From positions 434,001-498,000 of IMG/VR virus record IMGVR_UViG_3300005613_000001: a stretch of 64,000 nucleotides of DNA; one strand, given 5' to 3'. The stretch's first letter is position 1. Every line of letters begins with the position of its first letter. Made by a program: the position numbers and the translations under genes. Shown piece by piece: positions 6,785-43,012 of the stretch. Under the pieces are notes generated by a model. That model worked only from the letters and a program-made list of their open reading frames with translations. It was not told the origin of the DNA and did not search any database.

Positions 6785-7705
6785 ATGCCATTTTTTCAAA
6801 ATCCATTTTTTCAAGATTTTAGAGGATATTTAGTTCTGGGGGACAGACAACTGAGCCCCGTATTTACGTGCCCATTGCACGCCCAGAGAGGGCATGGGGA
6901 AATTGTCTCTATAGATTTGACAGCAACCCCTTATGATTTAACTGGGGCTGATGGGGATGGTAACGATACAGACGAATTAGTAATAAATTATGCCATCGAT
7001 CCCGCTTTGCGTGATTTTACTTCCATCACTGTAAATATTGCTGCTGAAGCACTTGTGCCTGCTGCTGCTACATTGGTGGAAATCGTCACCAGCTTAAATG
7101 AAGATGATAATTTTGCAGCTTTCTTTGAAGCAAGTCAGCAATTTACAGCAACCGGAGCAAATCCCACAGGGCGAGTGATTATTAAAGCTAAACTCCCCGC
7201 AGAACGCATTAAATTTTATGTTGCTAATACCGGGGCTGAAACCATCCTAAGATTTAATGCTCGGGCTGGGGTCAAAGAGCTACCTTCTTATTTTGCACGA
7301 CATACTGTAGCAAACAGATACACTTATACCGATGGTACTGCCCTGCTTATTGAACTTGATCCAAGTAACGGAGGCGGAGCTTCTGCTGTGGATGACGATG
7401 TTATTGATAATGCCGTAGATTTGAATGGCGTGTCACTAGGGTACGATTCATCTACAGTTCAAGAAGATTATGAACTTCTTGATGGGCAATCTGGGCTATT
7501 TACGTTCCAAAATATTTGCTTAGATGGAAATGGAGATATTGCCCAAATTATTGAATATCACGCAGGCGCAGGTGTAGGTGATCTAGCAAGAAAAATTTGT
7601 TATTTAAGAGATGGTGATACAAACCCAATTCAAATTACAGAAGAACCATATGTTTTAACGGCAGATGACTTGGTAGAGCCTGATTGTACCGATTGTCCGG
7701 CATAA
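6785..7705 (+). CDS. Hypothetical acidic protein, probably virion structural
   Basis: 306 aa, rich in D/N/T/A/G. TAAATA and a GAGG SD lie upstream. Confidence 0.6.
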   Translation: MPFFQNPFFQDFRGYLVLGDRQLSPVFTCPLHAQRGHGEIVSIDLTATPYDLTGADGDGNDTDELVINYAIDPALRDFTSITVNIAAEALVPAAATLVEIVTSLNEDDNFAAFFEASQQFTATGANPTGRVIIKAKLPAERIKFYVANTGAETILRFNARAGVKELPSYFARHTVANRYTYTDGTALLIELDPSNGGGASAVDDDVIDNAVDLNGVSLGYDSSTVQEDYELLDGQSGLFTFQNICLDGNGDIAQIIEYHAGAGVGDLARKICYLRDGDTNPIQITEEPYVLTADDLVEPDCTDCPA

Positions 7706-15379: not shown

Positions 15380-19456
<4,077 letters not shown>

Positions 19457-30005: not shown

Positions 30006-30040
30006 AAAGCCGCCTCAATTTTTTGGGGCGGCTTTTTTTT
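30006..30040 (+). terminator. Rho-independent terminator
   Basis: AAAGCCGCC-loop-GGCGGCT then T8. Confidence 0.88.
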
Positions 30041-31064
30041 ATCGACTCAAAATGTGTAGGAATTCCTGAGTAGAAGTTCCTTTGTAGTCCCTTTTGCTGT
30101 CCGCTTTAAATCGTGAATAATCCTTTTCACGCATGTCATACTTGCCGTATTTCTCCATTATCTTCTGGATTTCTTCAAATGATAGCAAACCTTCATTGTT
30201 GTAACTCAAGAAGATGTAGTTGAACTTGGCGGCGCTGATTATCTCATCTAGAGATTCGGGCACAGTTTTCTTGGAACAATATGTTGACCGCTCATATTCC
30301 CGCAACCCTGTCTTCCCTCTCGGTAAAAATTCATCATATTTTGCAATCGTATTGAGCAAATGATAGTTAGCACCGTAATCACGTTGGTTATATGGGGGGT
30401 CCAGGTAGAGAATTCCGCCTTCAATATGATGAATTAACTCGTTGGCATCCTGGTTGTAGGCTATGTTGCTGCCATCGTTAATGGTAAATTCCGGCGCATG
30501 CAACTGCATTGTGCGTATCGCTGTCTTTTTGAACTTCTTTAGGAATGCCCCATAGACAGAAGCAGTGTTGGCAACGCAATCTGCCGCCTCTAATAATGAA
30601 CATAAGTAGAAGTAATATTCGTTATCGTTGATTGCGCCGCTGGACAACCATCTTTCTATTTCCATTCTAATAGCATCAATCTTTTTGCCATTCTCATCAC
30701 TGAAATACATCCTTTCCGATCCACCAACGCAATAGTTGTTGAAGATAAACCCCTCTACTCCTGGTAGTTCGTTTAAATATTTGAGGCGGTCTACATGTGG
30801 AAAATGTTGGTTGTTGCGGATATAGTTGCGGCAGAAGACATAACTGTAATACTCAATATCGTTAGCAATGACGGATTGAACGTGGGGTTTGAAAAATCTC
30901 CCTACGATTCCCGTACCTGCAAACAGGTCACAGAATACTTGTTGTTCTAAATCTGGTACAGTCTCTTTAATTGTCTGATGAATAAAATCTAAAAGTCTGT
31001 ATTTAGAACCAATATAGTTAATCTGACATTTCGGTTTCATTAAAATTAGCTGGCAACTTAACAT
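30039..31064 (-). CDS. DNA adenine methyltransferase (Dam/D12 class)
   Basis: NYIGSK, DLFAGTGIV and YLDPPY. Confidence 0.92.
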   Translation of the reverse strand: MLSCQLILMKPKCQINYIGSKYRLLDFIHQTIKETVPDLEQQVFCDLFAGTGIVGRFFKPHVQSVIANDIEYYSYVFCRNYIRNNQHFPHVDRLKYLNELPGVEGFIFNNYCVGGSERMYFSDENGKKIDAIRMEIERWLSSGAINDNEYYFYLCSLLEAADCVANTASVYGAFLKKFKKTAIRTMQLHAPEFTINDGSNIAYNQDANELIHHIEGGILYLDPPYNQRDYGANYHLLNTIAKYDEFLPRGKTGLREYERSTYCSKKTVPESLDEIISAAKFNYIFLSYNNEGLLSFEEIQKIMEKYGKYDMREKDYSRFKADSKRDYKGTSTQEFLHILSR

Positions 31065-32169
31065 TCTCTAAAGTCTTTTGGGTAAAGACATATCTCCCAC
31101 CTGTTTTAAAGCCCAACTCCTCCCAATCAATTTGGTTGAGTTTGTCTCTCATCATCTCTAGACGCATGGGTATGGTTGGGAATATCGCCAAAATAGAGCC
31201 ATCATAGTTTTTACAAGGGTGTAGAAAGAAAGGATTCTTCGCCCTTGTCTTGCAATTGACATATATTCTGGGCTCATCACTCTTATGGCACTCTCTGCCC
31301 CACTTCCACCAATCCGCCTCTTTAAATTTCTTAACCCTTCTATTTAAGAGGCGGTCTTTGTGTTGCATGAGGTAGTCATTTTCCACATTGTAGTACATTC
31401 TCTTCAGCTTATTGGTCGTCCGCGTGTAGGAACAAACGAATTCCTCATTCCCATCTGGATGCTCAAACACTTCATCGAGACCACTAACTGCTCCTACTTT
31501 AACAAAGAACAAATCTTTAAAATCTAAGGAGTAATCTTTCTTAGTGAAACATATCTGCCCATTCATGCAGACAAAGTTTCTTTCCCCTTTAGTAGTGATG
31601 GTCTTTCTGGTGAGATTATCTTTCTCATACCGCCAAACTGCGCATGTGGGCGAGAAGCCTTTGAATATCTGTTTGTCTCCTAAGTCAAAAAAATGGGTTA
31701 TTGTTCCTTGATCCCATAGAAGTTGATTCAATTTAAAGCTGGAAGTGGCTTTGATGAAATCTCGGGGCGTAATGAAGATGATCTCCCCCTGAGCTTCCAA
31801 ATGCCGAAAACACTTCTCAATAAAAAACAAATATAAATTGGCTCTTTTATCAAACAAATCAAACCGCAATTTGTTTTTGGTGCCTTCTTGTATGTTTTTA
31901 AAAGCAACATAGGGTGGGTTACCCATAATAGTGACGAATTTGTTTTCTATTGAATAATCAAAAAAATCCATACAAAGACAATCATCAGGGCACAACTCTT
32001 TGTCCAATTCAATACAAGCGCTAGGTTCAAGGAGTGATAAGAAATCTCCCTCTCCCGCACTGGGCTCTAATGCTGTGCCATGATTCCGCCTCAAATGATT
32101 CATCTTCCCTACAATTTTTTGAGGCGTGAATATTTGACCTAGTTGTTCAACATTTCTGTGGATATCCAT
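31018..32169 (-). CDS. N6-adenine DNA methyltransferase (gamma class, TaqI/Eco57I-like)
   Basis: GQIFTP, LEPSAGEG and IMGNPPY. Confidence 0.9.
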   Translation of the reverse strand: MDIHRNVEQLGQIFTPQKIVGKMNHLRRNHGTALEPSAGEGDFLSLLEPSACIELDKELCPDDCLCMDFFDYSIENKFVTIMGNPPYVAFKNIQEGTKNKLRFDLFDKRANLYLFFIEKCFRHLEAQGEIIFITPRDFIKATSSFKLNQLLWDQGTITHFFDLGDKQIFKGFSPTCAVWRYEKDNLTRKTITTKGERNFVCMNGQICFTKKDYSLDFKDLFFVKVGAVSGLDEVFEHPDGNEEFVCSYTRTTNKLKRMYYNVENDYLMQHKDRLLNRRVKKFKEADWWKWGRECHKSDEPRIYVNCKTRAKNPFFLHPCKNYDGSILAIFPTIPMRLEMMRDKLNQIDWEELGFKTGGRYVFTQKTLENVKLPANFNETEMSD

Positions 32170-33058
32170 TTTCGATTAGAAGATTTGCCATTCGCACATA
32201 ATCCATATTAATATCAAATCCATAGGCAGTCATTCCCAAGCTTTTAGCAGCGTATAACTCACCGCCAGTACCAGCGAAAGGAACAACAACAATCCCATCT
32301 TCAGGTGGTTTTGATGCCAAGAGCAGCTTAGTGCTTAATTCCAAAGGTTTTTGTGTGGGGTGGGTAACAATTTCATGTTTATCATGTTCTTTCTTTTTCA
32401 TAGATGCGAAAATATTATCACAATCTTTGCAATAAAAGAACCTTTCTACACGGCCCGCTCCACCGGCTAGGGCTGGAATTTTAAATACATCTCTTGGCAA
32501 AGCACCCTTATCATGTGCTTTGTATATAGTTGTTTTCCCTTTTGAGGAAAACCGACCCTCTGTATCTTTTCTTTCTTTTCCTGCTGCGTTTTTCAAAAAG
32601 GTTGGGGTATAGGGTTCTCTTACATCATCTAAATTAAAGATTCGATTTTCGTCAGTCTTCCAAATTGCCAGCACAGATTCATGGCTTCGTTGCCAGAATT
32701 TATTTGTTGCTGAATTCTTATTAGTGTAATGCCAAACTAACCACCTACAGGGGTAGTCTATAGTGACAAATAAATGGGCGAGTATTTCAGAAAAGCCATA
32801 AATATAAGTTGTGCCTGAGGGTTTTAAAACCCGCATGGAATGGTGTATCCATTCTTGAGCCCATTCCACATATTCTTCAATCTCCACTTTGCATGTGTTA
32901 TTCCCGAAATCCTTTCCAATGTTATACGGAGGATCAATTAAAACGATATCAGAATATTCTCTGGGTAGGTTTCTAAGACCCAAAGTGGCATCCAATAATG
33001 TCACTCTATTTGGAAAGAAATGATTTTTGACTATGCACATATTATTGAGGGCTCCCAA
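32147..33058 (-). CDS. N4/N6 DNA methyltransferase (beta class)
   Basis: IDPPYNIGK, HPTQKPLEL and VPFAGTG; CxxC insertion. Confidence 0.92.
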   Translation of the reverse strand: MGALNNMCIVKNHFFPNRVTLLDATLGLRNLPREYSDIVLIDPPYNIGKDFGNNTCKVEIEEYVEWAQEWIHHSMRVLKPSGTTYIYGFSEILAHLFVTIDYPCRWLVWHYTNKNSATNKFWQRSHESVLAIWKTDENRIFNLDDVREPYTPTFLKNAAGKERKDTEGRFSSKGKTTIYKAHDKGALPRDVFKIPALAGGAGRVERFFYCKDCDNIFASMKKKEHDKHEIVTHPTQKPLELSTKLLLASKPPEDGIVVVPFAGTGGELYAAKSLGMTAYGFDINMDYVRMANLLIENGYPQKC

Positions 33059-33949: not shown

Positions 33950-34969
33950 ATGCCTGTAGATTTTGATACATTTGTTGATTGGGCCGAAAGCCGCTTCGGA
34001 GATATAATTGTCTCATATCCCGAAGTTAAAATCAATTCAATATTTAAAGACAATGACCAAGATCATAAACTCTGGTGTAATCCCGATGGCGGAAAAGACA
34101 ATATTGAACTAGGCGTCTACCATTGCTGGAAAACAGGGGAAACAGGCACGCTCGCGGGACTTGTTATGGAAGTGGATGGCTGCGCCTTTGAAGATGCAGT
34201 TGATATCCTCGGCGGTGATACGCCACTCACGGAACTCCAAGGGAAAATAGAAGATTTCTTCGATAACCTACAAACAAAAGAGGCGGCAGAAACCGAAGAG
34301 TCTGTTGATCTAAAGCTACCTCATGACACATATGCTATTGATGAATTGCCGCCCTGGAATCCATATCGCCAAAGAGCAGAAATTTATCTTAGAAATAGAA
34401 AAATCCCTACCACTAATCTAATGGTCTGCACAGAAGGGATCTACAGGAATAGAATTGTTATCCCGTATTATGACGAAAAAGGGAAATTAATCTATTTCAA
34501 CTGCCGGGCATTAAATGATAAACAAATACCCAAATACCGTGGACCTGAGAAAGATTTGGGAATCGGGAAGGGCGATGTTATTTTCATGCCCAAATGGCCC
34601 CCTAAAGGCGAGAAATTATATATTACAGAGGGCGAATTCGATGCTCTATCACTCTTTTATTCAGAGCTTTATTCAGCAGCTATGGGCGGTAAAAATCTCT
34701 CCGCAAAGCAAATTCAACTACTAAAGGATTATATCCCTGTTATCACGGTTGATAATGACGAGGCGGGCAGATTAGCTTTGCTCACCATAGGAGATTACCT
34801 ACTAGAACAAGGATTTGAAGTTTATTACGTCCGACCACCCCAAGGATTTAAAGATTGGAATGCGTTATTTGAGGAATATGACGCCCAAATTATAAAAGGC
34901 TATATCTCTACAAATGAGAAGCTCTACACCGAAAACACCAGTGTAGAGCTTCTTGAAAAGAGCTTGTGA
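33950..34969 (+). CDS. DnaG-like DNA primase
   Basis: N-terminal Zn-finger-like region (YHCWK..E.G), RIVIP, TOPRIM ITEGEFDAL and DNDEAG. Confidence 0.9.
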   Translation: MPVDFDTFVDWAESRFGDIIVSYPEVKINSIFKDNDQDHKLWCNPDGGKDNIELGVYHCWKTGETGTLAGLVMEVDGCAFEDAVDILGGDTPLTELQGKIEDFFDNLQTKEAAETEESVDLKLPHDTYAIDELPPWNPYRQRAEIYLRNRKIPTTNLMVCTEGIYRNRIVIPYYDEKGKLIYFNCRALNDKQIPKYRGPEKDLGIGKGDVIFMPKWPPKGEKLYITEGEFDALSLFYSELYSAAMGGKNLSAKQIQLLKDYIPVITVDNDEAGRLALLTIGDYLLEQGFEVYYVRPPQGFKDWNALFEEYDAQIIKGYISTNEKLYTENTSVELLEKSL

Positions 34970-35059
34970 ATAAAACTCGCTTTCTCCAGAACACTCTGGA
35001 TGAGCGTGCAACGATTTATTCTTTACTTATTTTATATAGAACAAACTGGTTAAATTATT

Positions 35060-35590
35060 ATGTCCCAATTAGAATACTTTAATGGTAAGATCGTTACGAT
35101 ACTTACAACTCCAATCAATCGCAACTTTAAAGAAGAGGCCGCAGCACTAGGAAAACCCAAGCTATTTCCTGCCAACCTCATGGATCACTTTGTCGGGCGT
35201 TTTGAGAGTTATGATGCACTAGGGGTGATGTTGGCTCACCCTGATGCCGCTGTAGGTACAAAAGCCTACTATTTTTTGGATAAAATTGTAGGGATTGTTG
35301 AAGAACAGGAATTAAATCCTGACGATCCCCAGGAAGCTGAATTAATTGAAAAATACAAGGCATTAAAGCAAACACCGCCTCAAGATAAGGTGTATTGCCC
35401 CAAAGGACATGCACTAGATATACCACCTAATATCAAACCTGGATCACTTGTAGCTTGCCCTAAATGTCAAACTCAATTCCAATTGCCTGACGATAATCCG
35501 CCTCAAGATAAACCCGCCCCAATAAATCAATCCAACTTTGTGGATATTGATGGGATGTCCAAACTAGCAGAAGAAGCTAAATCAAAATAA
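35060..35590 (+). CDS. Putative Sm/LSm-fold protein with C-terminal zinc ribbon
   Basis: GKIVTILT...FVGRFESYDALGVML...YFLDKIVGI resembles Sm1/Sm2; CPKGH...CPKC. Confidence 0.45.
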   Translation: MSQLEYFNGKIVTILTTPINRNFKEEAAALGKPKLFPANLMDHFVGRFESYDALGVMLAHPDAAVGTKAYYFLDKIVGIVEEQELNPDDPQEAELIEKYKALKQTPPQDKVYCPKGHALDIPPNIKPGSLVACPKCQTQFQLPDDNPPQDKPAPINQSNFVDIDGMSKLAEEAKSK

Positions 35591-36685
35591 ATCATCTAAA
35601 TCATCAAAATGATCGTCGTCGGTGGGTGTAGATATAAGCGTATCAATATCACCGGGTTCAGGTGGTGGTGGTATAAACTTTGAAGGTTCAAAAATCTCTG
35701 GACCTTCTTTTTTCTTTGTAGTCTTTTTCTTCGTAGTCTTTTTCTTCTTCTTTTTAGCAGCCGCCGCCTTATCTTCCGCAGAGCGTAATTTAATTGTCAT
35801 CGGTTTCTTTTTCTTTGGCGTTGACGTTGGTTTAGATTTTGATTTGGGTTCTGGTTTGGGTTCTGGAGGTTCTGGTTTGGGTTCTGGAGGTTCTGGTTTG
35901 GGTTCTGGAGGTTCTGGTTTGGGTTCTGGAGGTTCTGGTTTGGGTTCTGGTTTGGGATATTGTATGGCTGGTCGTGGGGGTTTACGATGTTTGGTAATAT
36001 AAACAAGTATATCATCACCTTCAACCCCTGCTTCTTTAGCATCAACTATCCACTTCTCCGCTTCAGAAGGCGTCAATTTCATTTTTATCAAACTATCATA
36101 TACATCTTTCTCTGCTCCCTCAAATGATGCTCTGGAAGGCTTTGGAGGCTTCTTTTCTTTTTTCTCTTCTTGTGCTTGTGGAATTTTCCCTGCCCGAGTA
36201 ATAGCAGCATCTAAATTCCTTCTAAACAGCCTTTTCATGGTGTCTGCAAATTGATTAAGTGCAGCCCCAATGTTATCATTGCCCAATTCATTTTCTAATT
36301 GCAGATAAGCATTATGGGTATCTTTATAAACTCCCAGACTTGCATGTTCGAGTCCTAGTTTTTTCTTAATAGCTTGCCACCAGCGAGGAGACTCATATTC
36401 CGTGCCCGTCTGTGGGGATTCCCCCGTAGACCAGTTGCGCATCCGATCTCCTGTCGCTTGCATTTTGTCCCCTGCCCTCCATAACCAGTGAGCCAAACCA
36501 GAGCCCTTCCCAGGTTGATTTTGCATTATTTGGGTGTATAAAGAAGCAACCATTCTATCAATTTGTGCATCAATAGAAGGCAAAAGATCACTCATGATTT
36601 GATCTTTTGTTACACCGGCTTCCAGTTCGTCAGCCTCAATTAATTTTTGGGGATTTGCAAATATTTCATTAAGTGGGAAGTCCAT
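35582..36685 (-). CDS. Pro/Lys-rich protein with a RuvA-C-like three-helix motif
   Basis: DVYDSLIKMKLTPSEAEKWI, (PEPKPEP)n, a Lys-rich segment and an acidic tail. Confidence 0.7.
   Translation of the reverse strand: MDFPLNEIFANPQKLIEADELEAGVTKDQIMSDLLPSIDAQIDRMVASLYTQIMQNQPGKGSGLAHWLWRAGDKMQATGDRMRNWSTGESPQTGTEYESPRWWQAIKKKLGLEHASLGVYKDTHNAYLQLENELGNDNIGAALNQFADTMKRLFRRNLDAAITRAGKIPQAQEEKKEKKPPKPSRASFEGAEKDVYDSLIKMKLTPSEAEKWIVDAKEAGVEGDDILVYITKHRKPPRPAIQYPKPEPKPEPPEPKPEPPEPKPEPPEPKPEPPEPKPEPKSKSKPTSTPKKKKPMTIKLRSAEDKAAAAKKKKKKTTKKKTTKKKEGPEIFEPSKFIPPPPEPGDIDTLISTPTDDDHFDDLDDLF
35843..35956 (-). repeat. 21-bp tandem repeat encoding PEPKPEP
   Basis: GGTTCTGGTTTGGGTTCTGGA repeated about 5 times. 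Confidence 0.9.
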
Positions 36686-37194
36686 TAGATACCTTCTAAT
36701 ACATAGTCACCTATTTTTTTCAAGGACATAAGGCAGGCATCAAATCTATGAAATTCACTTGACAAATATTGTAATCTCAATTCTTGAAACCCATTCATAC
36801 CTGTATCTGTTAAATCGAAAAAGAATGATTGTCCTCTTCTTCCTACCACCTTATTTTTCTTTTTCATAAGTATATAGGCTGCGGCACCTAAATCTGATAC
36901 TTCCCCTATTTCCCCGACATTTGGCTCATGTTCTCTCATTTTCTTGAGAGACATTAAGCATGAGTCAAATTTATGAAAATCGCTTGAGAGATACTCAAAA
37001 TTTAGATTATCAAAGTCATCAAGCTCAGACTCATTCATAAGGAAATATACTGCTTGTCCTTTCTTTCCGCCGATTTCGTGCTTGTTCATTAGACAAAAAG
37101 CAGCGGCACCTAAATCGGTTACATACTTTACAACTCGTTTTTCTTCCACTTTCTTTACCTTTCTTATACTGCATTTTCTGCGGCGATCAAACAT
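36685..37194 (-). CDS. Internally duplicated small-domain protein (DUF5659-like x2)
   Basis: DLGAAAFCLM...SSDFHKFDSCLMSLKK and DLGAAAYILM...SSEFHRFDACLMSLKK. Confidence 0.7.
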   Translation of the reverse strand: MFDRRRKCSIRKVKKVEEKRVVKYVTDLGAAAFCLMNKHEIGGKKGQAVYFLMNESELDDFDNLNFEYLSSDFHKFDSCLMSLKKMREHEPNVGEIGEVSDLGAAAYILMKKKNKVVGRRGQSFFFDLTDTGMNGFQELRLQYLSSEFHRFDACLMSLKKIGDYVLEGI

Positions 37195-38171
37195 CCCCTG
37201 CTAACGCTATAAAGCGGATCAGTAGGACGGATTATCTTACCTATCTTAATTGGCAATTTCGCTTGTTTAATAACATCATTAAACAACGCATCAAACCCAT
37301 TTGGCAAACTTGATCCTCCGGCAATTACAATATCAATTGGATCGTCTGTTCTTGCTTTCTTACCTGCACCTGCCAAACCTTCTTTAATGCCTGTAGCTGT
37401 CTTTTCCATCATAATTCTATATTGAGTTTGAATGGCTCTTTCTACAAGCGTGCTTGGTTCTTTCGTTAAATCAATATTTCTCTTTTCTTTGTTGATAAAA
37501 GTAGCCGTTTCACTAACCGCCTTGGCAGCCCTTTTGTCAATCCAGTCACCACTATTAACTAATGAAAAACTAAATACTGGCGCACTGTAAATAGAGAAGC
37601 ACAGATTTACCATTCCCGCCCCAAATGAAATTCCAATGCCTGTATATGCCTTTTTCCCAAGCTCAGCATACACCAATGCTAAGCCCTCGTTAATGGGTTG
37701 AGCATTTACTGTGTGTCCGGTTTCATCTTTAAACGCCTTAAAAATAGCCTCTAAGACTTTACCGTGATAATCTGCATCGGTCTCTTCATTAATGGCATTT
37801 GCCGGGACGCTGTAATATAAGGTTTCTTTGTCCTTAGACACATTATCCAACAGGCTGTGGACCATAATTTTTAAAATCTGAAAGGCATGAATCTCACCCG
37901 GATTCACACACCCTTCTTTCATAGGTCTCTTTAGATTTAACGCACTCATCGTATAAGCCATATCTACGGCTTTCTGTCCCAATGCATAAGCAATATCATC
38001 TCGCTCAACAAGAGGAACGCCTGCATTTTTCATCATATTAAATACAAAACGGTTCTCTAATGGGAATTCAAGGAAGGCATTTACTTCCTTCTTATGAACA
38101 AAATTCTTATTTTCATCTCGCTGACAAGTCACTAAATTATACGTGCCCGCGTCAAAACCGATTCCTGACAT
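37164..38171 (-). CDS. Actin-like ATPase (MreB/MamK/ParM superfamily)
   Basis: Phosphate-1 IGFDAGT, PMKEG, YSVPA, connect-1 INEGLA, phosphate-2 ISFGAG, adenosine IAGGSS and connect-2 SVSRG. Confidence 0.9.
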   Translation of the reverse strand: MSGIGFDAGTYNLVTCQRDENKNFVHKKEVNAFLEFPLENRFVFNMMKNAGVPLVERDDIAYALGQKAVDMAYTMSALNLKRPMKEGCVNPGEIHAFQILKIMVHSLLDNVSKDKETLYYSVPANAINEETDADYHGKVLEAIFKAFKDETGHTVNAQPINEGLALVYAELGKKAYTGIGISFGAGMVNLCFSIYSAPVFSFSLVNSGDWIDKRAAKAVSETATFINKEKRNIDLTKEPSTLVERAIQTQYRIMMEKTATGIKEGLAGAGKKARTDDPIDIVIAGGSSLPNGFDALFNDVIKQAKLPIKIGKIIRPTDPLYSVSRGCLIAAENAV

Positions 38172-38183
38172 TGCTTTACCTTT

Positions 38184-38408
38184 CTATTCCTGTACCTGTT
38201 CTCCAAATTTAATCTTACCCCCCGCCTCAAAATCGGGGACCATAAAGGGCTCATCTTCTTTTTGAGCTATTTTACCCTTGCCATCAACGGAAACCTTTAT
38301 GTCATTAGTAGTTATGTTTAAATTAAGGTCTAATGTGATATTAACATCACATTCACCGTCTTTAGTCACAACGGTAACTTTGGGTTTGCCTTTTAATAAC
38401 TGTACCAT
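38184..38408 (-). CDS. Small beta-rich hypothetical protein
   Basis: 74 aa directly upstream of the actin gene. Confidence 0.6.
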   Translation of the reverse strand: MVQLLKGKPKVTVVTKDGECDVNITLDLNLNITTNDIKVSVDGKGKIAQKEDEPFMVPDFEAGGKIKFGEQVQE

Positions 38409-38456
38409 GCTTTATATCTATCCTACCAAATACCCATTTAATCTAGTTACTGAGAT

Positions 38457-38618
38457 TTAAAACTCCCAAAAAGGGATGGTTTCGACAGGGATAGGACCAT
38501 CACCACTACCACTAGAACTGGAACTAGAACTGGATGATGTGGGTGGGCGTTGTAGACAATTTTTAATCCAATTAACGAGGCGCTTGAGGGCATCCAATAA
38601 TTTCTTCAGCCATTGCAT
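38457..38618 (-). CDS. 53-aa peptide: amphipathic helix plus poly-Ser
   Basis: Below the ORF-track cutoff. Manual translation MQWLKKLLDALKRLVNWIKNCLQRPPTSSSSSSSSGSGDGPIPVETIPFWEF; GGAGG SD; ATG 1 nt after the GT9 stop. Confidence 0.65.
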   Translation of the reverse strand: MQWLKKLLDALKRLVNWIKNCLQRPPTSSSSSSSSSGSGDGPIPVETIPFWEF

Positions 38619-38619
38619 T

Positions 38620-39615
38620 TTATCCTCCAATGATTTTCAATGGTTGCTTTAACATCTTATCTACTCCTAATAGAATCATGTCTGCTGTAAGTTCTGTCAA
38701 ACAGGGTTTTGGATATGCCTTACTTTTTGGGCAATCGGGCCAATTATAACAAGGTCCACAGTTCCAGTTGCCGTCGTCTCGATGCTTTTGTACAAGTGTC
38801 CAATTTTCATACCACCTTCCATATACCTTTCCATCGACCATTGTGAAAATACCAACCTGGGGCTTTCCCAAACCCCCGGCCATATGAAAGGTCGCTGTAT
38901 CGACTGAGACTATATAATCCGCTGATGCAACAAAACTCATCCATTTTCTAATAGACCCCATAAGCAAAGGCACTTTTAGATGTTCAAGCATTGGGATTGG
39001 ACCCGTATGTGTGTAAAACACATAGCATCCACGCTCCCGTAGTCCGTTTACGACCCCCTCCATTTGATGTGAAATTAAATTTTTAGTCGCCATTGCTGAA
39101 ATTGGCGAAAATAATACTGTTGGTCCACTCTGGGTGCGATGAGACTCAATTTCTCGCTTCGCCTCTATTAATTCTTGTTCACTGAATTGGAAGTGCATAT
39201 TGTGGTTTTCTAGTGCAACCCCACAATGGTTAGCCCAAATATCACTTCTATTTTTGCCAGAGAGAGGGGCCATTCTGACTTCATACCGACAGCACGCATT
39301 GGTAGTATTATAAGATGTCAGATAGTCTCCCTGGTCTATTTTTCCAGAATCAACCAGTTCATCTACAAAGGGGTGTCCTTTGATTGCTTGGTGATATATC
39401 CCTGGGCAAGCAAAAACTATCTTAGCATCGGGCATAATCCTTTTAAAATCTTCAAAGATCATTCGGTGAACTAGAATATCCCCTAGTCCCCCATTAGCAC
39501 GATAAATGAGTATAGAATTTCGCTTGTCGCTAAATTCCCTTAAAGACAGATTGGTAGTTCTCTGGCTTTTTTTGACAAGTCTTGATAATAACTTCTTATG
39601 CTGAAGTGCTCTCAT
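38620..39615 (-). CDS. GT9 (heptosyltransferase-like) glycosyltransferase
   Basis: GGLGD, ADYIVSVDTATFHMAGGLGKPQVGIF and a Cys cluster (CGPC...C...C). Confidence 0.85.
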   Translation of the reverse strand: MRALQHKKLLSRLVKKSQRTTNLSLREFSDKRNSILIYRANGGLGDILVHRMIFEDFKRIMPDAKIVFACPGIYHQAIKGHPFVDELVDSGKIDQGDYLTSYNTTNACCRYEVRMAPLSGKNRSDIWANHCGVALENHNMHFQFSEQELIEAKREIESHRTQSGPTVLFSPISAMATKNLISHQMEGVVNGLRERGCYVFYTHTGPIPMLEHLKVPLLMGSIRKWMSFVASADYIVSVDTATFHMAGGLGKPQVGIFTMVDGKVYGRWYENWTLVQKHRDDGNWNCGPCYNWPDCPKSKAYPKPCLTELTADMILLGVDKMLKQPLKIIGG

Positions 39616-40199
39616 TCAAATAATTTCGCAGGGAATTTAGGAGGCGGCAATTGGTAGAACCGGGGTACTTGTCTTTGGCTGAACGACCCGTGCCCACGCC
39701 CTTGACCTTCGCCTTCGCCTTCTCCTTCACCCTCTCCTTCTACACCAAATGGTTGCCCCCTGCCTTTGCTGGGGTCTGTTGTACCTCTAAAGCTACCGCC
39801 TCTTTTTAAATGTTGTTGGATTGCATGTCCTTGTTCGTGTAACGCTCTGGAATAGGGCAATTCATAAACACGGGGCTCATCTTTTTTAACTTCGAATGGA
39901 CTATCTTTTTCATCAGTGGGGTTTAAATCTTTGGCCCAAACGAGGACACCACCTTCATCATTATCACTGGGTTCATTAATAATAATCCAATATACTTGGA
40001 ATTTTTCTGGCATTTGCTCTGTAGACGGCCAGCCGAACAAGCTATTAATTGCAAACCAAACACCAAAGCCCAAGAATAATGTTGCTGTAATGGTTATCAT
40101 TTTAATTACCCACAGACCTTTAGCTCCAATAACAAACCAAAGGATGAGGGCAGACAACACAATGAAAGCTATAGGAATAGCAGACGTTTCTAAACTCAT
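39612..40199 (-). CDS. Two-TM membrane protein with Gly/Glu-rich tail; third component of the motor-like cluster
   Basis: Two N-terminal TMs, a soluble domain, GEGEGEGEGEGQGRG and a Pro-rich end; ATGA overlaps on both sides. Confidence 0.75.
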   Translation of the reverse strand: MSLETSAIPIAFIVLSALILWFVIGAKGLWVIKMITITATLFLGFGVWFAINSLFGWPSTEQMPEKFQVYWIIINEPSDNDEGGVLVWAKDLNPTDEKDSPFEVKKDEPRVYELPYSRALHEQGHAIQQHLKRGGSFRGTTDPSKGRGQPFGVEGEGEGEGEGEGQGRGHGSFSQRQVPRFYQLPPPKFPAKLFE

Positions 40200-40846
40200 G
40201 GGTCTACCTCCTCTTCATAATTATTTTCATCAAAACCTCCACCATTAACTGCTTTATCTGCAATGGTCTTGGGCAATTGATTCATACTTACCACGGAGCC
40301 CTTTTTGTCTAATAAGAACCTGCAAACAGTTTTTTCATCACCATCTTCGTCTAGTGTAACCTTTTTTATAGCCACGGTTTTGAGTGTTGGATTAATTTTA
40401 TCAATCTGGACGGTAACCTCAGTAGGTTTATTGGGAGTTCGCTTCGCATACATGTGTACGTTCATTACATACTCACCAGGGATAATACCTCGAATCGTTA
40501 TAATTTCCCTATTTTCGTTATATTTAATTGTCTCACCATCAGGAGTCTTAAAAGTATCATTGCTATGCCCTAAATCGTCACGATCTAAGTGCATTAGTCC
40601 ATCTTCCCGCCTCCTAAAGAACACAAGATGGTCAGCGGGGTCTTGCAAATAAGAATCTACATCATTATTTAACTCATTATCCCAAGTGGTTGTAATAACA
40701 AACTCAGCTTTGGCTTCAGAGGCATTATCCAGTTTTGCTTCTGGATTAATTAAAATGTAAGCTATGAAGAATAACGCTACAAATCCCAATAGCGCATTGA
40801 ATAGCAAATCTAAGAAGGCTGTATTAGCCCCATAATATTGTCTCAT
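40196..40846 (-). CDS. ExbD/TolR/MotB-like single-TM protein with a YfaP/DUF2135-like domain
   Basis: TM AFLDLLFNALLGFVALFFI with the membrane Asp; W..E..NDVDSYLQDP...RE.ITIRG..PGEYVMNVHMY. Confidence 0.7.
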   Translation of the reverse strand: MRQYYGANTAFLDLLFNALLGFVALFFIAYILINPEAKLDNASEAKAEFVITTTWDNELNNDVDSYLQDPADHLVFFRRREDGLMHLDRDDLGHSNDTFKTPDGETIKYNENREIITIRGIIPGEYVMNVHMYAKRTPNKPTEVTVQIDKINPTLKTVAIKKVTLDEDGDEKTVCRFLLDKKGSVVSMNQLPKTIADKAVNGGGFDENNYEEEVDP

Positions 40847-41427
40847 TAGATGTCCTTTTTGACTAAATTTAGTCCTTGAGCTAGATTAAAATACTGGATT
40901 TTAAGGAGTTGAGAACAAATTAAACCGATAAGAGTAGTATAGAGGGCTGTAGACATACCTCCACTCATGCTGCTTAACAAATCCTGTACGGACGTGATAT
41001 CACTTACATCTAAGGTGCTAAATCCAACGAGCATTAAAATAAAACCACTTACTGTTCCAATCATACCTATATTGACACACATTTCACTTGAAAACCAACC
41101 AATTTCTTCCAACCTAGATAGCTTCTCAACTTCATCTTCCCACTTTTTTCGTCTTACTTGTTGTCTTTTTCTTTGCTTTGGAGGAAGTGAAGCTTGCGGC
41201 CCAGGTCGCGGCGGCACATCCATATTCAGCACATTACTTAATTTGAATGTTTTCAATCCACACCAAGCTGAGACATATACAAATATCCCAAAAATAACAA
41301 AACTAAGTTTGGTTAAATCTCTTTCCCAAACCTTTTGAAAAGCATCCATATAAAAGGCTGCTACCACTCCCACAAGCACTAAACCGATTACAAGCCACCA
41401 TTTTAAAAATAATTTGTGTTTAATCAT
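40846..41427 (-). CDS. MotA/TolQ/ExbB proton-channel family protein
   Basis: IGMIGTVSGF and GMSTALYTTLIGL TM hairpin plus two N-terminal TMs. Confidence 0.88.
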   Translation of the reverse strand: MIKHKLFLKWWLVIGLVLVGVVAAFYMDAFQKVWERDLTKLSFVIFGIFVYVSAWCGLKTFKLSNVLNMDVPPRPGPQASLPPKQRKRQQVRRKKWEDEVEKLSRLEEIGWFSSEMCVNIGMIGTVSGFILMLVGFSTLDVSDITSVQDLLSSMSGGMSTALYTTLIGLICSQLLKIQYFNLAQGLNLVKKDI

Positions 41428-41460
41428 TATATTTTCCTCTCACAAGTAAGAGAGTAATCG

Positions 41461-41498
41461 AAAAAAAATCTCCTCGGGCCAAAGGACCGAGGAGATTT
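41461..41498 (-). terminator. Rho-independent terminator
   Basis: On minus: AAATCTCCTCGG-loop-CCGAGGAGAT followed by a T-run. Confidence 0.88.
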
Positions 41499-41521
41499 AT
41501 ATTTAATCCGGGGTTTAATTC

Positions 41522-42133
41522 TTAGCTGTTGCAGCTTGAACGAATGGACAGAAGAACGGCAACATCGGCGTCAGCGGCACCAGATTCACTGTTTGCAACC
41601 TGAATCTTGGAGACAGCCAAATCACCATTGTTGAAGATCTGCGTATCGGCAGCAGCCAACGTAAAGGTTGCTGTGGTTAGACCATTCAAGCGAACCTGAA
41701 CAGAACCAGAACCATTGTTGGTAATCTGCGTGAACACAGCGGCGGAACCGTATGTGGTCACAACATCTACCTCGTTGTCCGCAAAAGTAGTACCCGCAGT
41801 GGCGGAAATCGTGGTTGCAGCGGGATATGTATTCTCGCCAGCAACGTCAGAATAAACACTACCATCATCACTTACCACTTCAACAATTGCATCTTCAAGA
41901 GAGCACTGTGGGTAAGCAAATCTCTTCCAATAATTACAATCCGTAAATGTCTCCCCGTCAGACAACTTACGATTAATTAAATTTGGACCCATAACATAAA
42001 CTTGACGTTGCTTAGAAGGATCAATCTGATCTCCAAGCCCTTGACCCGTAACGGCACCGGCTGATGCGGTGGAGGGGTCTTTGTCCAAAAGGCCCTGTTC
42101 AACGTTGTTCAACGCAACTCTAAATACGCTCAT
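41522..42133 (-). CDS. Probable abundant virion protein (e.g. head decoration)
   Basis: A/T/S/N-rich, with frequent C-ending codons (TTC, AAC), GAGGAG SD and its own terminator. Confidence 0.6.
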   Translation of the reverse strand: MSVFRVALNNVEQGLLDKDPSTASAGAVTGQGLGDQIDPSKQRQVYVMGPNLINRKLSDGETFTDCNYWKRFAYPQCSLEDAIVEVVSDDGSVYSDVAGENTYPAATTISATAGTTFADNEVDVVTTYGSAAVFTQITNNGSGSVQVRLNGLTTATFTLAAADTQIFNNGDLAVSKIQVANSESGAADADVAVLLSIRSSCNS

Positions 42134-42201
42134 ACCTAACTCCTCAAATATGAATATACAGTATGACTCTCAATCTTCAAAAGTATATATGCAGCTATTA
42201 A

Positions 42202-42810
42202 CTATTTTAGATCCAAGATGTCCCCATTAAACATCTTTTCATAAAGAGAAGTGCCTAAACCAGTGGGTACTAAACTAGTCTTAATACCTTTTGAGGCGGC
42301 AAGATAAAGCGGTCCACACTCAACGCCTATTACCCAACCCGCATTTAGAACATCAGTAGTGATTTCTGGCTCAAACCCCTGTTTTGCAGCCATTTCGATG
42401 ACCGCCTCTTTTTGGAAATAGGACATAGATTTGACAGGATGTAAACCTTCAGGGCATATTGCGCACTTGGCTGTGGGATCATGATGGGGAACATCTACCC
42501 GTTCGCAAGCAATATTGGAATCATCTAATAAACCGATAATAGGATGTGTTCGCATATTAAATTTCAAGGGTTTAATTAAGGCAAAATCATTCTTTTTTTG
42601 GGTCATTTTAGAGTGACCAAACACCCTTGGATTATTAAACCAGCTTACAAGTTCATCTTTACAGCAAATAAAAATTTCAACACCATTTAATTCTCGTTCA
42701 AGAGTCGGTAGTAAACAATTTAATTGTACCACATATTCGGAAGACTCCCCTAAATACGATATACAAATCCTATCTTTTATTTTTGCATATATAGGTAAAG
42801 GCATTCCCAT
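42202..42810 (-). CDS. Degenerate GT9-like protein
   Basis: C-terminal WVIGVECGPLYLAASKGIKT resembles the GT9 motif (i.g.DSGp.HlAaa.g). Confidence 0.45.
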   Translation of the reverse strand: MGMPLPIYAKIKDRICISYLGESSEYVVQLNCLLPTLERELNGVEIFICCKDELVSWFNNPRVFGHSKMTQKKNDFALIKPLKFNMRTHPIIGLLDDSNIACERVDVPHHDPTAKCAICPEGLHPVKSMSYFQKEAVIEMAAKQGFEPEITTDVLNAGWVIGVECGPLYLAASKGIKTSLVPTGLGTSLYEKMFNGDILDLK

Positions 42811-43012
42811 GAGTCAATCCGATAAAGAAAAAGCCGCTGCGGCGAGGGCTGGGTTGCTAAGTTTTCTGGGTCAATTTGGCGAACCTGATCCCTATAATAA
42901 GATAGTTTTGGAAGTTCTTTTTGAGGAAATGATAAAACATGAAGGTATTTCTGTATCTGGCGAAAAGGGACAAAACAGGAGTCAAAGTGCTCGCTCATCT
43001 AAGAAGCAATAA
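42809..43012 (+). CDS. Possible small protein
   Basis: 67 aa with a CATATATAGGTA motif upstream; overlaps both neighbours. Confidence 0.3.
   Translation: MSQSDKEKAAAARAGLLSFLGQFGEPDPYNKIVLEVLFEEMIKHEGISVSGEKGQNRSQSARSSKKQ

Follow-up and report, generated by a model that had tools for sequence, protein, structure and literature searches.

A Volactin-family actin-like gene and three clade-restricted neighbouring genes in a 527-kb bacteriophage

Cytoskeletal organisation of phage infection is so far known mainly from the tubulin PhuZ in nucleus-forming jumbo phages, together with one prophage actin, AlpC. The latter is encoded by prophage CGP3 of Corynebacterium glutamicum, where it is co-transcribed with a small adaptor, AlpA, and is needed for efficient phage DNA replication (PMC4446434). 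Actin-like proteins also drive plasmid segregation, as in the ParMRC, AlfAB and Alp7AR systems, while MamK forms the filament of the magnetosome chain and is joined to its cargo by MamJ, an acidic, repetitive, Pro/Glu-rich linker. In archaea, volactin (VolA, HVO_2015) of Haloferax volcanii forms dynamic filaments that span the cytoplasm and acts in cell-shape transitions (PMC10869688).

We examined a 64,000-nt window (positions 434,001 to 498,000) of the 527,112-bp tailed-phage record IMGVR_UViG_3300005613_000001. A sequence-only reading of this window had described an actin-like ATPase with all of its motifs intact, flanked by co-oriented, overlapping accessory genes, and had inferred an actin-based counterpart of PhuZ with an adaptor, a membrane tether and a flexible linker protein. 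The observation holds, with three corrections given below, whereas the interpretation is only partly supported. We found no published description of such a module in the literature that was searched. The features discussed, in coordinates of the window, are as follows.

33950-35590 (+), convergent neighbours: a Toprim primase (33950-34969) and a zinc-ribbon protein (35060-35590)
35582-36685 (-), third gene (PK367), 367 aa: helical N-domain, possible small helical module, PEPK linker, polybasic patch and acidic-hydrophobic tail
35585-35815 (-), PK367 polybasic patch (residues 291-330) and acidic-hydrophobic tail (residues 331-367)
35816-35965 (-), PK367 PEPK linker (residues 241-290), encoded by 21-nt tandem DNA repeats
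36188-36610 (-), PK367 conserved N-terminal helical domain (residues 26-166)
36685-37149 (-), tandem-domain protein (dup169), probably 154 aa from a GTG at 37149; the open frame runs up to an ATG at 37194
37164-38171 (-), actin-like ATPase, 335 aa, Volactin family (PF25216)
38184-38408 (-), small conserved partner of 74 aa (p74)
38457-38618 (-), amphipathic-helix plus poly-Ser peptide of 53 aa (p53)
38620-39615 (-), GT9-type glycosyltransferase
41522-42133 (-), Ala/Thr/Gly-rich protein of 203 aa

The actin-like protein and its conservation

The 335-aa protein matches Pfam Volactin (PF25216) at 225.3 bits against a gathering threshold of 35 (E = 1.7e-66), with residues 4-331 aligned to profile positions 3-321 of 321, and the match was confirmed on the genome. 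Its AlphaFold2 model (pLDDT 91.5, pTM 0.90) has the four-subdomain actin fold, and a Foldseek search returned the filament formers MamK, MreB, BeeR and actin with probability 1.00 and TM scores of 0.6-0.73 (MamK filament 5ljv 0.71/0.73, BeeR 0.72). The MreB/Mbl and MamK profiles did not recognise the protein above their cut-offs, as MreB/Mbl (PF06723) scored 21.4 bits against 27 and covered only residues 59-128, and MamK (NCBIfam NF040964) scored 27 bits against 400. The resemblance to MamK is structural only.

The phosphate-1, inter-domain and adenosine motifs are present, with D7, G9, T10, E162 (in PINE) and G285/G286 invariant in 24 sequences that include bacterial relatives at 35% identity. 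In contrast to the claim that all motifs are intact, the phosphate-2 motif reads S-F-G-A-G-M rather than the canonical D-x-G-G-G-T, and therefore the usual D-x-G-x-G-T criterion is not fulfilled. The family form is S182-[FCAWY]-G-[AGS]-G-M-[VIT]-N, in which S182, G184 and G186 are invariant, and the Ser and the Gly-x-Gly-Met-x-Asn part are invariant across the phage clade, its bacterial relatives and a 33%-identical phage actin (LR745208.1). This variant is thus a family trait and not decay, although the ATPase chemistry may differ from that of canonical actins. In some orthologues (the related locus L090 and an Atlas cluster of 57 viral members) an intein sits exactly inside this loop, and inteins usually lie in functionally critical sites.

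At least 145 IMG/VR viral contigs carry relatives, and the 80 examined, which include contigs of about 300-530 kb, are 63-76% identical. Relatives were also found in 1267 protein clusters on contigs of up to 673 kb and in GenBank LR756511.1 (595 kb). The actin is the most conserved gene of its neighbourhood (median identity 67%, against 33-48% for neighbours), as expected for a polymer with many interfaces and exceptionally high for a phage gene. The actin fold is shared with Hsp70, sugar kinases and EutJ, and the protein could instead be a non-polymerising ATPase with a chaperone-, kinase- or EutJ-like role, its neighbours being unrelated small genes kept together only by descent; the missing phosphate-2 Asp and the lack of any demonstrated interaction are compatible with this. 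Nucleotide-dependent polymerisation was not measured here, yet the top 48 structural matches are polymer-forming actins, with EutJ appearing at rank 49, and the founder of the Pfam family forms dynamic filaments in vivo (PMC10869688). Given also the conservation of the protein and the near-universal synteny of three ORFan partners in the 80 loci, we consider this alternative very unlikely.

The flanking genes

All five open reading frames, the actin gene and its four named neighbours, lie on the minus strand at the stated coordinates and are tightly packed. Conservation of gene order across large phages had been put forward in advance as a test of the proposal, and three of the four named neighbours passed it, being syntenic and restricted to this phage clade, so that the description as private accessory genes is right. 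The tandem-domain gene was found in all 73 related loci with enough downstream sequence, p74 immediately upstream of the actin gene in 76 of 79 loci with enough upstream sequence, and a third-gene family at the same position in almost all loci. This is more than chance, although synteny within one phage clade could reflect shared descent rather than function, and the more distant phage actin of LR745208.1 has entirely different neighbours.

The p74 protein has a beta-type N-terminal segment, a variable acidic middle and, in an alignment of 55 orthologues, a conserved C-terminal W-x-IPDF-x4-K-I-x-FGK motif; it has no Pfam, PHROG, NCBIfam or Atlas match. It was said to overlap the actin gene, but the two are separated by a 12-nt gap. 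A predicted complex of the actin with each neighbour had likewise been proposed as a check; the one complex that was modelled, actin with p74, gave no verdict, and no binding was shown for any partner. Neither p74 nor the tandem-domain protein shows a recognisable adaptor or DNA-binding fold.

The two halves of dup169 are identical at 31 of 66 positions, and its AlphaFold2 model (pLDDT 89) shows two beta-alpha-beta-beta-alpha-alpha units of ~70 aa. Orthologues comprise 40 distinct tandem forms and 15 distinct single-domain forms. The 31-nt overlap of its open frame (36685-37194) with the actin gene is probably an ORF-extension artefact, as a GTG at 37149 follows the same GAAAGGTAAAG ribosome-binding site as the actin ATG and gives 154 aa, the length called for the 94%-identical orthologue. 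Of 340 relatives, the 120 listed lie on fragments or on large contigs (up to 513 kb) and carry no informative name. One repeat resembles a DUF5659 cluster of the Atlas (TM 0.72 over 67 aa), but only 4 of 42 orthologues hit the Pfam profile (PF18903; best E = 0.0047), which is a lead that does not settle membership either way.

PK367 was described as a Pro/Lys-rich protein with a long PEPK linker and an acidic-hydrophobic tail. This is correct, as residues 241-290 are 46% Pro in PEPK repeats (direct repeat family at 35826-35984), residues 291-330 have a net charge of +15, and residues 331-367 have a net charge of -10 and end in DDDHFDDLDDLF. A clear orthologue is present in two related loci, L085 and L086, and an analogous K/R patch plus acidic tail is present in P0121 and P0122. 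The N-domain is homologous to that of the gene at the same position in other loci (hhalign against a 37-member downstream-gene cluster, 95.7%, E = 9.6e-9; further clusters were linked). The protein is fast-evolving, with a helical N-domain, a long disordered linker and a short C-terminal motif. The PEPK linker and acidic tail are lineage-specific decorations of a conserved family, whose C-terminus is more often a basic amphipathic helix.

The 53-aa peptide is preceded by a GGAGG ribosome-binding site, and its residues 1-22 are strongly amphipathic (muH 0.74, against 0.25 +/- 0.13 in shuffles). However, it has no homologue in any of 85 related loci, including a relative whose actin is 96% identical, and is absent from the closest relative, L085. 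We conclude that it is a lineage-specific ORFan, probably not part of the conserved module, and its proposed role as the membrane tether is not supported.

Farther upstream, the GT9-type glycosyltransferase (PF01075, E = 4.5e-7) is a frequent neighbour, present in 58 of 80 loci between the 203-aa gene and p74. The 203-aa gene (76 of 80 loci; no family match) has its own terminator, a hairpin plus T-run at 41461-41503, and is probably a separate unit. The primase (Toprim_2, E = 7e-14) and the zinc-ribbon protein are both present downstream of the module in 50 of 80 loci.

Possible roles of the module

Based on these findings, we propose that the region is a phage-encoded actin cytoskeleton module, a reading to which we give a probability of about 0.45. 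In this view, the Volactin-family protein would bind ATP and polymerise into filaments in the infected cell, served by three dedicated genes that sit tightly beside it on the same strand. The C-terminal peptide of p74 may regulate or dock on the filament. The tandem-domain protein is encoded where ParR, AlfB and AlpA adaptors are encoded, and a single-copy form would have to pair up to equal the tandem form, suggesting that it acts as a dimer or pseudo-dimer. The third gene product would be a flexible tether. The module would position or transport something large during a long infection by a 0.5-Mb phage, possibly replicating phage DNA, a replication or assembly zone, or capsids, although the cargo is a guess. 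In that role it would work like AlpC/AlpA of prophage CGP3, MamK/MamJ, or the tubulin PhuZ of other jumbo phages. The modelled fold, the family, the conservation, the synteny and the domain anatomy are what the analysis itself demonstrates, while polymerisation, partner binding and cargo are inferred from them without experiment. Relatives in the same Pfam family point to cargo and DNA work, as bacterial homologues at 35% identity are embedded in gas-vesicle gene clusters in 4 of 4 loci examined and an Acidobacteriota cluster fuses Volactin to an HU-type DNA-binding domain; the primase operon is, moreover, a conserved convergent neighbour.

Alternatively, the protein may act on the shape, size or envelope synthesis of the host cell, as volactin or MreB would, rather than moving phage cargo. 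The only characterised member of the family acts in cell-shape transitions (PMC10869688), MreB is among the best structural matches, and the co-directional gene array also holds the GT9 glycosyltransferase, a MotA/ExbB-type channel and two membrane proteins. However, the MotA-type module is near the actin gene in only 6-7 of 80 loci, the actin has no membrane-targeting extension at either end, the amphipathic peptide is not conserved, and the bacterial relatives sit in organelle rather than cell-wall clusters. We therefore regard this explanation as unlikely.

A third possibility is a ParMRC-like type II system that keeps the huge genome as a plasmid-like episome during a carrier or pseudolysogenic state. 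The actin gene followed directly by a small gene whose single-copy form would need to dimerise is the parM-parR gene order, and a prophage precedent exists in AlpC/AlpA. However, a repeat search over 34900-43000 found only coding repeats (the PEPK linker and the internal domain duplication) and the terminator hairpin, with no iterated centromere-like repeats. No RHH or HTH fold was recognised in the downstream protein, whose confident model has no significant PDB or BFVD match (best Foldseek E = 0.07, best Z = 4.8), an outcome that leaves its standing as a DNA-binding adaptor undecided. Genes for lysogeny or plasmid maintenance were not sought. As the best structural matches are MamK and MreB, and p74 and a long tether protein have no ParMRC counterpart, we also consider this reading unlikely.

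More speculatively, and tentatively, a large clade of huge phages, whose largest records reach about 0.5-0.67 Mb, may build its own actin cytoskeleton, in which a Volactin-type filament and three phage-private partners (a peptide-motif protein, a dimeric or tandem alpha/beta domain protein and a long disordered tether) together organise replication or assembly inside the host. This would be an actin counterpart of the PhuZ spindle, evolutionarily linked to a previously unnoticed bacterial actin embedded in gas-vesicle gene clusters. If the protein, which comes with its own partner set in the largest known phages, forms filaments, it would show that actin-based intracellular organisation is also a widespread viral strategy in bacteria, and the module would offer a compact system of an actin plus three small partners, directly testable in vitro and in surrogate hosts. 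It also ties the little-studied Volactin family to cargo and organelle contexts.

Comparison with described systems

PhuZ is a possible functional analogue, as a cytoskeletal polymer encoded by a very large phage, but it has a tubulin fold, and no tubulin-family gene (PF00091) was found in the 527-kb genome, in a search whose control was positive in 13 of 14 genomes; nothing here shows a phage nucleus. The ParMRC, AlfAB and Alp7AR systems share an actin ATPase followed by a small gene in the adaptor position, and differ in the features given above and in lacking the extra conserved partners, p74 and the tether protein. Volactin belongs to the same Pfam family and is a cellular archaeal protein tied to the rod-to-disk shape change; the present protein, which was not aligned directly to HVO_2015, is encoded by a huge tailed phage with three clade-private partner genes, a context to which the founder's role in disk-shape morphogenesis, not examined here, cannot be transferred.

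The MamK filament is the best structural match, and MamJ resembles the third gene product, although homology between PK367 and MamJ was not tested, identity to MamK is only 16% and no magnetosome genes are present. Bacterial relatives of this actin also sit in organelle clusters, those of gas vesicles. In the case of AlpC/AlpA, AlpA binds a defined DNA site in its own promoter; no sequence relation was shown, as neither homology to AlpC or AlpA nor adaptor binding to phage DNA and filament was examined, and no repeats or DNA-binding fold were found at the present locus. The module described here has three partners and occurs in genomes of roughly 0.5-0.67 Mb in the few near-complete records seen. 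As a phage-encoded actin-like protein co-transcribed with a small adaptor, AlpC/AlpA is the nearest precedent for how the module may work.

The actin-like gene and its genomic setting

The 527,112-bp IMG/VR virus record in which the window lies (bases 434001-498000) is estimated as complete by CheckV and carries hallmarks of a tailed phage, namely a T4-type large terminase, P2-I and gpV-type baseplate proteins, PKD-domain proteins, a 1357-aa collagen-repeat protein, three DNA methyltransferases and a Toprim primase. The GC content is about 41% and the standard code reads cleanly. The collagen-repeat protein (15380-19453, minus strand) has at least ten collagen triple-helix repeat stretches (PF01391, E 1.9e-71), coincides with a GC-rich island (0.50-0.54 against about 0.40 elsewhere) and is probably a fibre or whisker protein. 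The three methyltransferase genes are consecutive (30039-33058, minus strand), lie just upstream of the primase region and comprise a D12 Dam-type, an Eco57I/N6-type and one that, on reading of the sequence without a profile scan, looks like an N4/N6 type. Nine genes, including the actin-like gene, sit almost without gaps on the minus strand:

40846-41427 (-), MotA/ExbB-type protein
40196-40846 (-), membrane protein
39612-40199 (-), membrane protein
38620-39615 (-), GT9 glycosyltransferase
38457-38618 (-), 53-aa peptide
38184-38408 (-), 74-aa protein (p74)
37164-38171 (-), actin-like protein
36685-37194 (-), tandem-domain protein, as an open frame
35582-36685 (-), Pro/Lys-rich protein (PK367)

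A hairpin with a T-run at 41461-41503 closes the preceding 203-aa gene. The MotA/TolQ/ExbB-type channel protein (PF01618, E 1.6e-8) and the two membrane proteins that follow it (216 and 195 aa, the latter containing a GEGEGEGEGEG run) belong to the same co-directional array, but they are found near the actin gene in only 6-7 of 80 related loci, and in a different position there. Expression was not examined, as no sequencing run was listed, while a repeat search over 34900-43000 detected no centromere-like repeats and a shared ATTAAATGGG motif, found upstream of p74 both here and in the closest related locus (L085), proved not to be a genome-wide promoter signal. None of the module genes has a paralogue elsewhere in the genome.

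The observation made in the sequence-only reading holds, since every feature that it described is present, although three corrections are needed. First, the actin ATPase motifs had been called intact, whereas the phosphate-2 loop reads S-F-G-A-G-M rather than D-x-G-G-G-T; the Ser, both Gly and the Met are invariant in the phage clade and in 35%-identical bacterial relatives, and the variant is thus a family trait. Second, the flanking genes had been described as overlapping, but the tandem-domain gene most likely starts at GTG 37149, a codon that lies behind the same GAAAGGTAAAG ribosome-binding site that precedes the actin ATG; this start gives 154 aa, as in the closest orthologue, and removes the apparent overlap. 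Third, the 74-aa gene is separated from the actin gene by 12 nt.

The actin-like protein matches Pfam Volactin (PF25216) end to end at 225 bits against a cut-off of 35, and is only marginal to MreB (21 bits) and MamK (27 bits against 400). No PDB sequence matches it. The AlphaFold2 model is confident (pLDDT 91.5), and its best structural matches are filament formers at about 16% identity, namely the MamK filament (TM 0.71/0.73), BeeR (0.72), MreB and eukaryotic actin. The protein has no N- or C-terminal extension that could serve as a membrane anchor.

Distribution and conservation of the partner genes

At least 145 IMG/VR contigs hold relatives of the actin, of which the best 80 are 63-76% identical and include contigs of 532, 340, 323 and 298 kb. 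The protein collection searched holds 1267 clusters at E <= 1e-5, on contigs up to 673 kb, and GenBank phages hold two uncultured records, LR756511.1 (595 kb, 65% identity) and LR745208.1 (485 kb, 33% identity). Among 185,579 species-representative genomes only eight loci matched; all are MAG contigs, labelled with eight different taxa, and one is a 546-kb contig. The six close matches are probably misbinned phage contigs, and therefore no host was assigned. The actin is the most conserved gene in its neighbourhood, with a median identity of 67%, compared with 48% for the tandem-domain and 203-aa proteins, 43% for the primase, 42% for GT9, 37% for p74 and 33% for the zinc-ribbon protein. Some orthologues carry a LAGLIDADG-type intein inserted exactly in the phosphate-2 nucleotide-binding loop, as GIS / intein / CGAGMVN in the 712-aa phage orthologue of locus L090 (L090:5369-7507), and an ESM Atlas cluster of 57 viral members shows the same architecture.

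Synteny across large phages and complex prediction of the actin with its neighbours had both been put forward in advance as ways of testing the proposed partnership. With respect to synteny, p74 lies immediately upstream of the actin gene in 76 of 79 loci with enough sequence. Its alignment shows a conserved N-terminal beta-type segment, a variable acidic middle and a conserved C-terminal motif, W-x-IPDF-x4-K-I-x-FGK, while searches of Pfam, PHROG, NCBIfam and the Atlas gave no signal. The complex prediction, run for the actin with p74 and not for the tandem-domain protein or the acidic tail of PK367, scored 0.03 against a mark of 0.32, a result that returned no verdict and counts neither for nor against binding. 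In 20 related loci (within L003-L061; for example L006:6198-7196), one to three extra ORFs of about 140-560 aa lie between the actin gene and the tandem-domain gene, with most of these loci having a single ORF of about 200-330 aa. The four ORFs scanned have no informative Pfam match, and tblastn matched the window genome only for ORFs from the L041 and L044/L046 loci, at unrelated places.

The tandem-domain protein is present in 73 of 73 loci with at least 1.5 kb downstream, with 40 distinct two-domain forms (147-175 aa) and 15 distinct one-domain forms (70-107 aa), and this occurrence as one or two copies suggests a dimer or pseudo-dimer. The model (pLDDT 89) consists of two beta-alpha-beta-beta-alpha-alpha units. 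Fold searches with Foldseek against the PDB, with VIA wide and against BFVD gave nothing significant, the best Z being 4.8 in a tie that included GvpF, although one repeat resembles DUF5659. Pfam LidA_Long_CC (PF18641) hits 33 of 42 orthologues (best E 6e-9), JGI names some of them 'regulator of sigma D', and a PDB profile search gave Rsd at E 0.1. However, neither identity fits the alpha/beta model and neither appears in the fold searches, so we assigned the protein to neither family and have no explanation for these hits. At least 120 of the 340 relatives lie on fragments or on large contigs (up to 513 kb) and carry no informative name.

PK367 has an obvious orthologue only in the closest relative, where the N-domain is 60% identical while the actin is 96% identical, so the protein evolves fast. 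Profile comparison nevertheless links its residues 26-166 to the N-domain of the gene at the same position in 37 other loci (95.7% probability, E 9.6e-9), and most other positional analogues link to the same family at 73-93%. All 45 distinct members contain a strongly disorder-prone stretch; 17 end in a strict Y-[YFI]-K-x-L-L type basic helix, several of the 18 unclassified ones look like variants of that helix on reading (these were not counted), and ten end in acidic tails, as here. The conserved anatomy is therefore a folded N-domain, a long linker and a short terminal motif, of which the PEPK repeats, the +15 basic patch and the DDDHFDDLDDLF tail are this lineage's version. We also considered a TonB-like identity, because of the EP/KP repeats and the nearby MotA/ExbB gene, and rejected it, as no hydrophobic N-terminal anchor was seen on reading the sequence (this was not computed), there is no TonB C-domain and the linker is lineage-specific. 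The acidic tail bears only a resemblance to an SSB- or T7-like replisome-docking peptide, which was not tested. In four loci (L057, L059, L076 and L081, at about 7250-7680) the zinc-ribbon protein homologue follows the single-domain protein directly, on the same strand as the actin gene, and takes the place of the linker protein, while in the window it lies convergent instead.

The 53-aa peptide, which the sequence-only reading had offered as a membrane tether, is truly amphipathic (N-terminal helix muH 0.74), has a run of nine Ser and is preceded by a good ribosome-binding site. However, it has no homologue in any related locus, and in the closest relative the same spacer is non-coding DNA that contains two copies of a CCC..CCCTAAAGAGGT-like element (L085:110-300).

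Volactin-family genes in other genomic contexts

The distant phage LR745208.1 has different neighbours around its actin. Bacterial members of the family (35% identical to the phage actin) sit inside gas-vesicle gene clusters in all four loci examined (L091:5929-7008, L092:2577-3581, L096:7001-8053 and L097:2958-4007), which are a Patescibacteria contig that also carries mraZ, rsmH and ftsL, plus Nitrospirota, Candidatus Scalindua and Omnitrophica contigs. The clusters contain GvpA, F/L, G, K, O and an AAA ATPase. In each, the actin gene follows a ~170-aa gene, and in the two loci whose sequence we read this protein looks like a winged-helix protein with a tail. This branch has more than 1300 protein clusters, and a literature search on gas vesicles and actin homologues found nothing relevant; it may represent an actin that positions gas vesicles. 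In addition, an Acidobacteriota cluster of 69 proteins (~456 aa) in the ESM Atlas fuses a Volactin domain to an HU/IHF-type DNA-binding domain (PF00216); no locus of this cluster was examined. The founder of the family, volactin, forms dynamic filaments that bridge the cytoplasm (PMC10869688). The phage genome itself has no tubulin, and no gas-vesicle genes were found in it either, although the gas-vesicle profiles did not match in any control genome and this control was thus uninformative.

Proposed role and comparison with known systems

The interpretation given in the sequence-only reading, an actin-based counterpart of PhuZ with an adaptor, a membrane tether and a flexible linker protein, is partly supported. 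Our analysis demonstrates an actin-fold, Volactin-family protein with invariant nucleotide-site residues and under unusually strong constraint, which sits in a tight co-directional array with three clade-private partners of defined anatomy. Beyond this we infer that the protein polymerises, that the partners regulate the filament or couple it to cargo, and that the system organises replication or assembly in the infected cell, which would be analogous to AlpC/AlpA (PMC4446434), MamK/MamJ or PhuZ; sequences of archaeal volactin, AlpC and MamJ were not compared directly. The conserved convergent primase operon (50 of 80 loci) and the HU fusion hint at DNA as the cargo, but only weakly. Against this reading stand the absence of centromere-like repeats, of a recognisable DNA-binding fold and of a positive interaction prediction. 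Host-shape or envelope remodelling, episome partition, and a non-polymerising ATPase are the rival explanations.

In the literature searched we found no paper describing this module or an actin in huge or jumbo phages, and the supplements of Al-Shayeb 2020 gave only unrelated hits, while databases label the protein only generically, as 'actin-like ATPase involved in cell morphogenesis' or 'volactin'. Phage and prophage actin-like proteins and phage tubulins are already known. The module described here differs in three ways: it belongs to the Volactin family, it is conserved across the largest known phages, and its three-partner set resembles no described adaptor.
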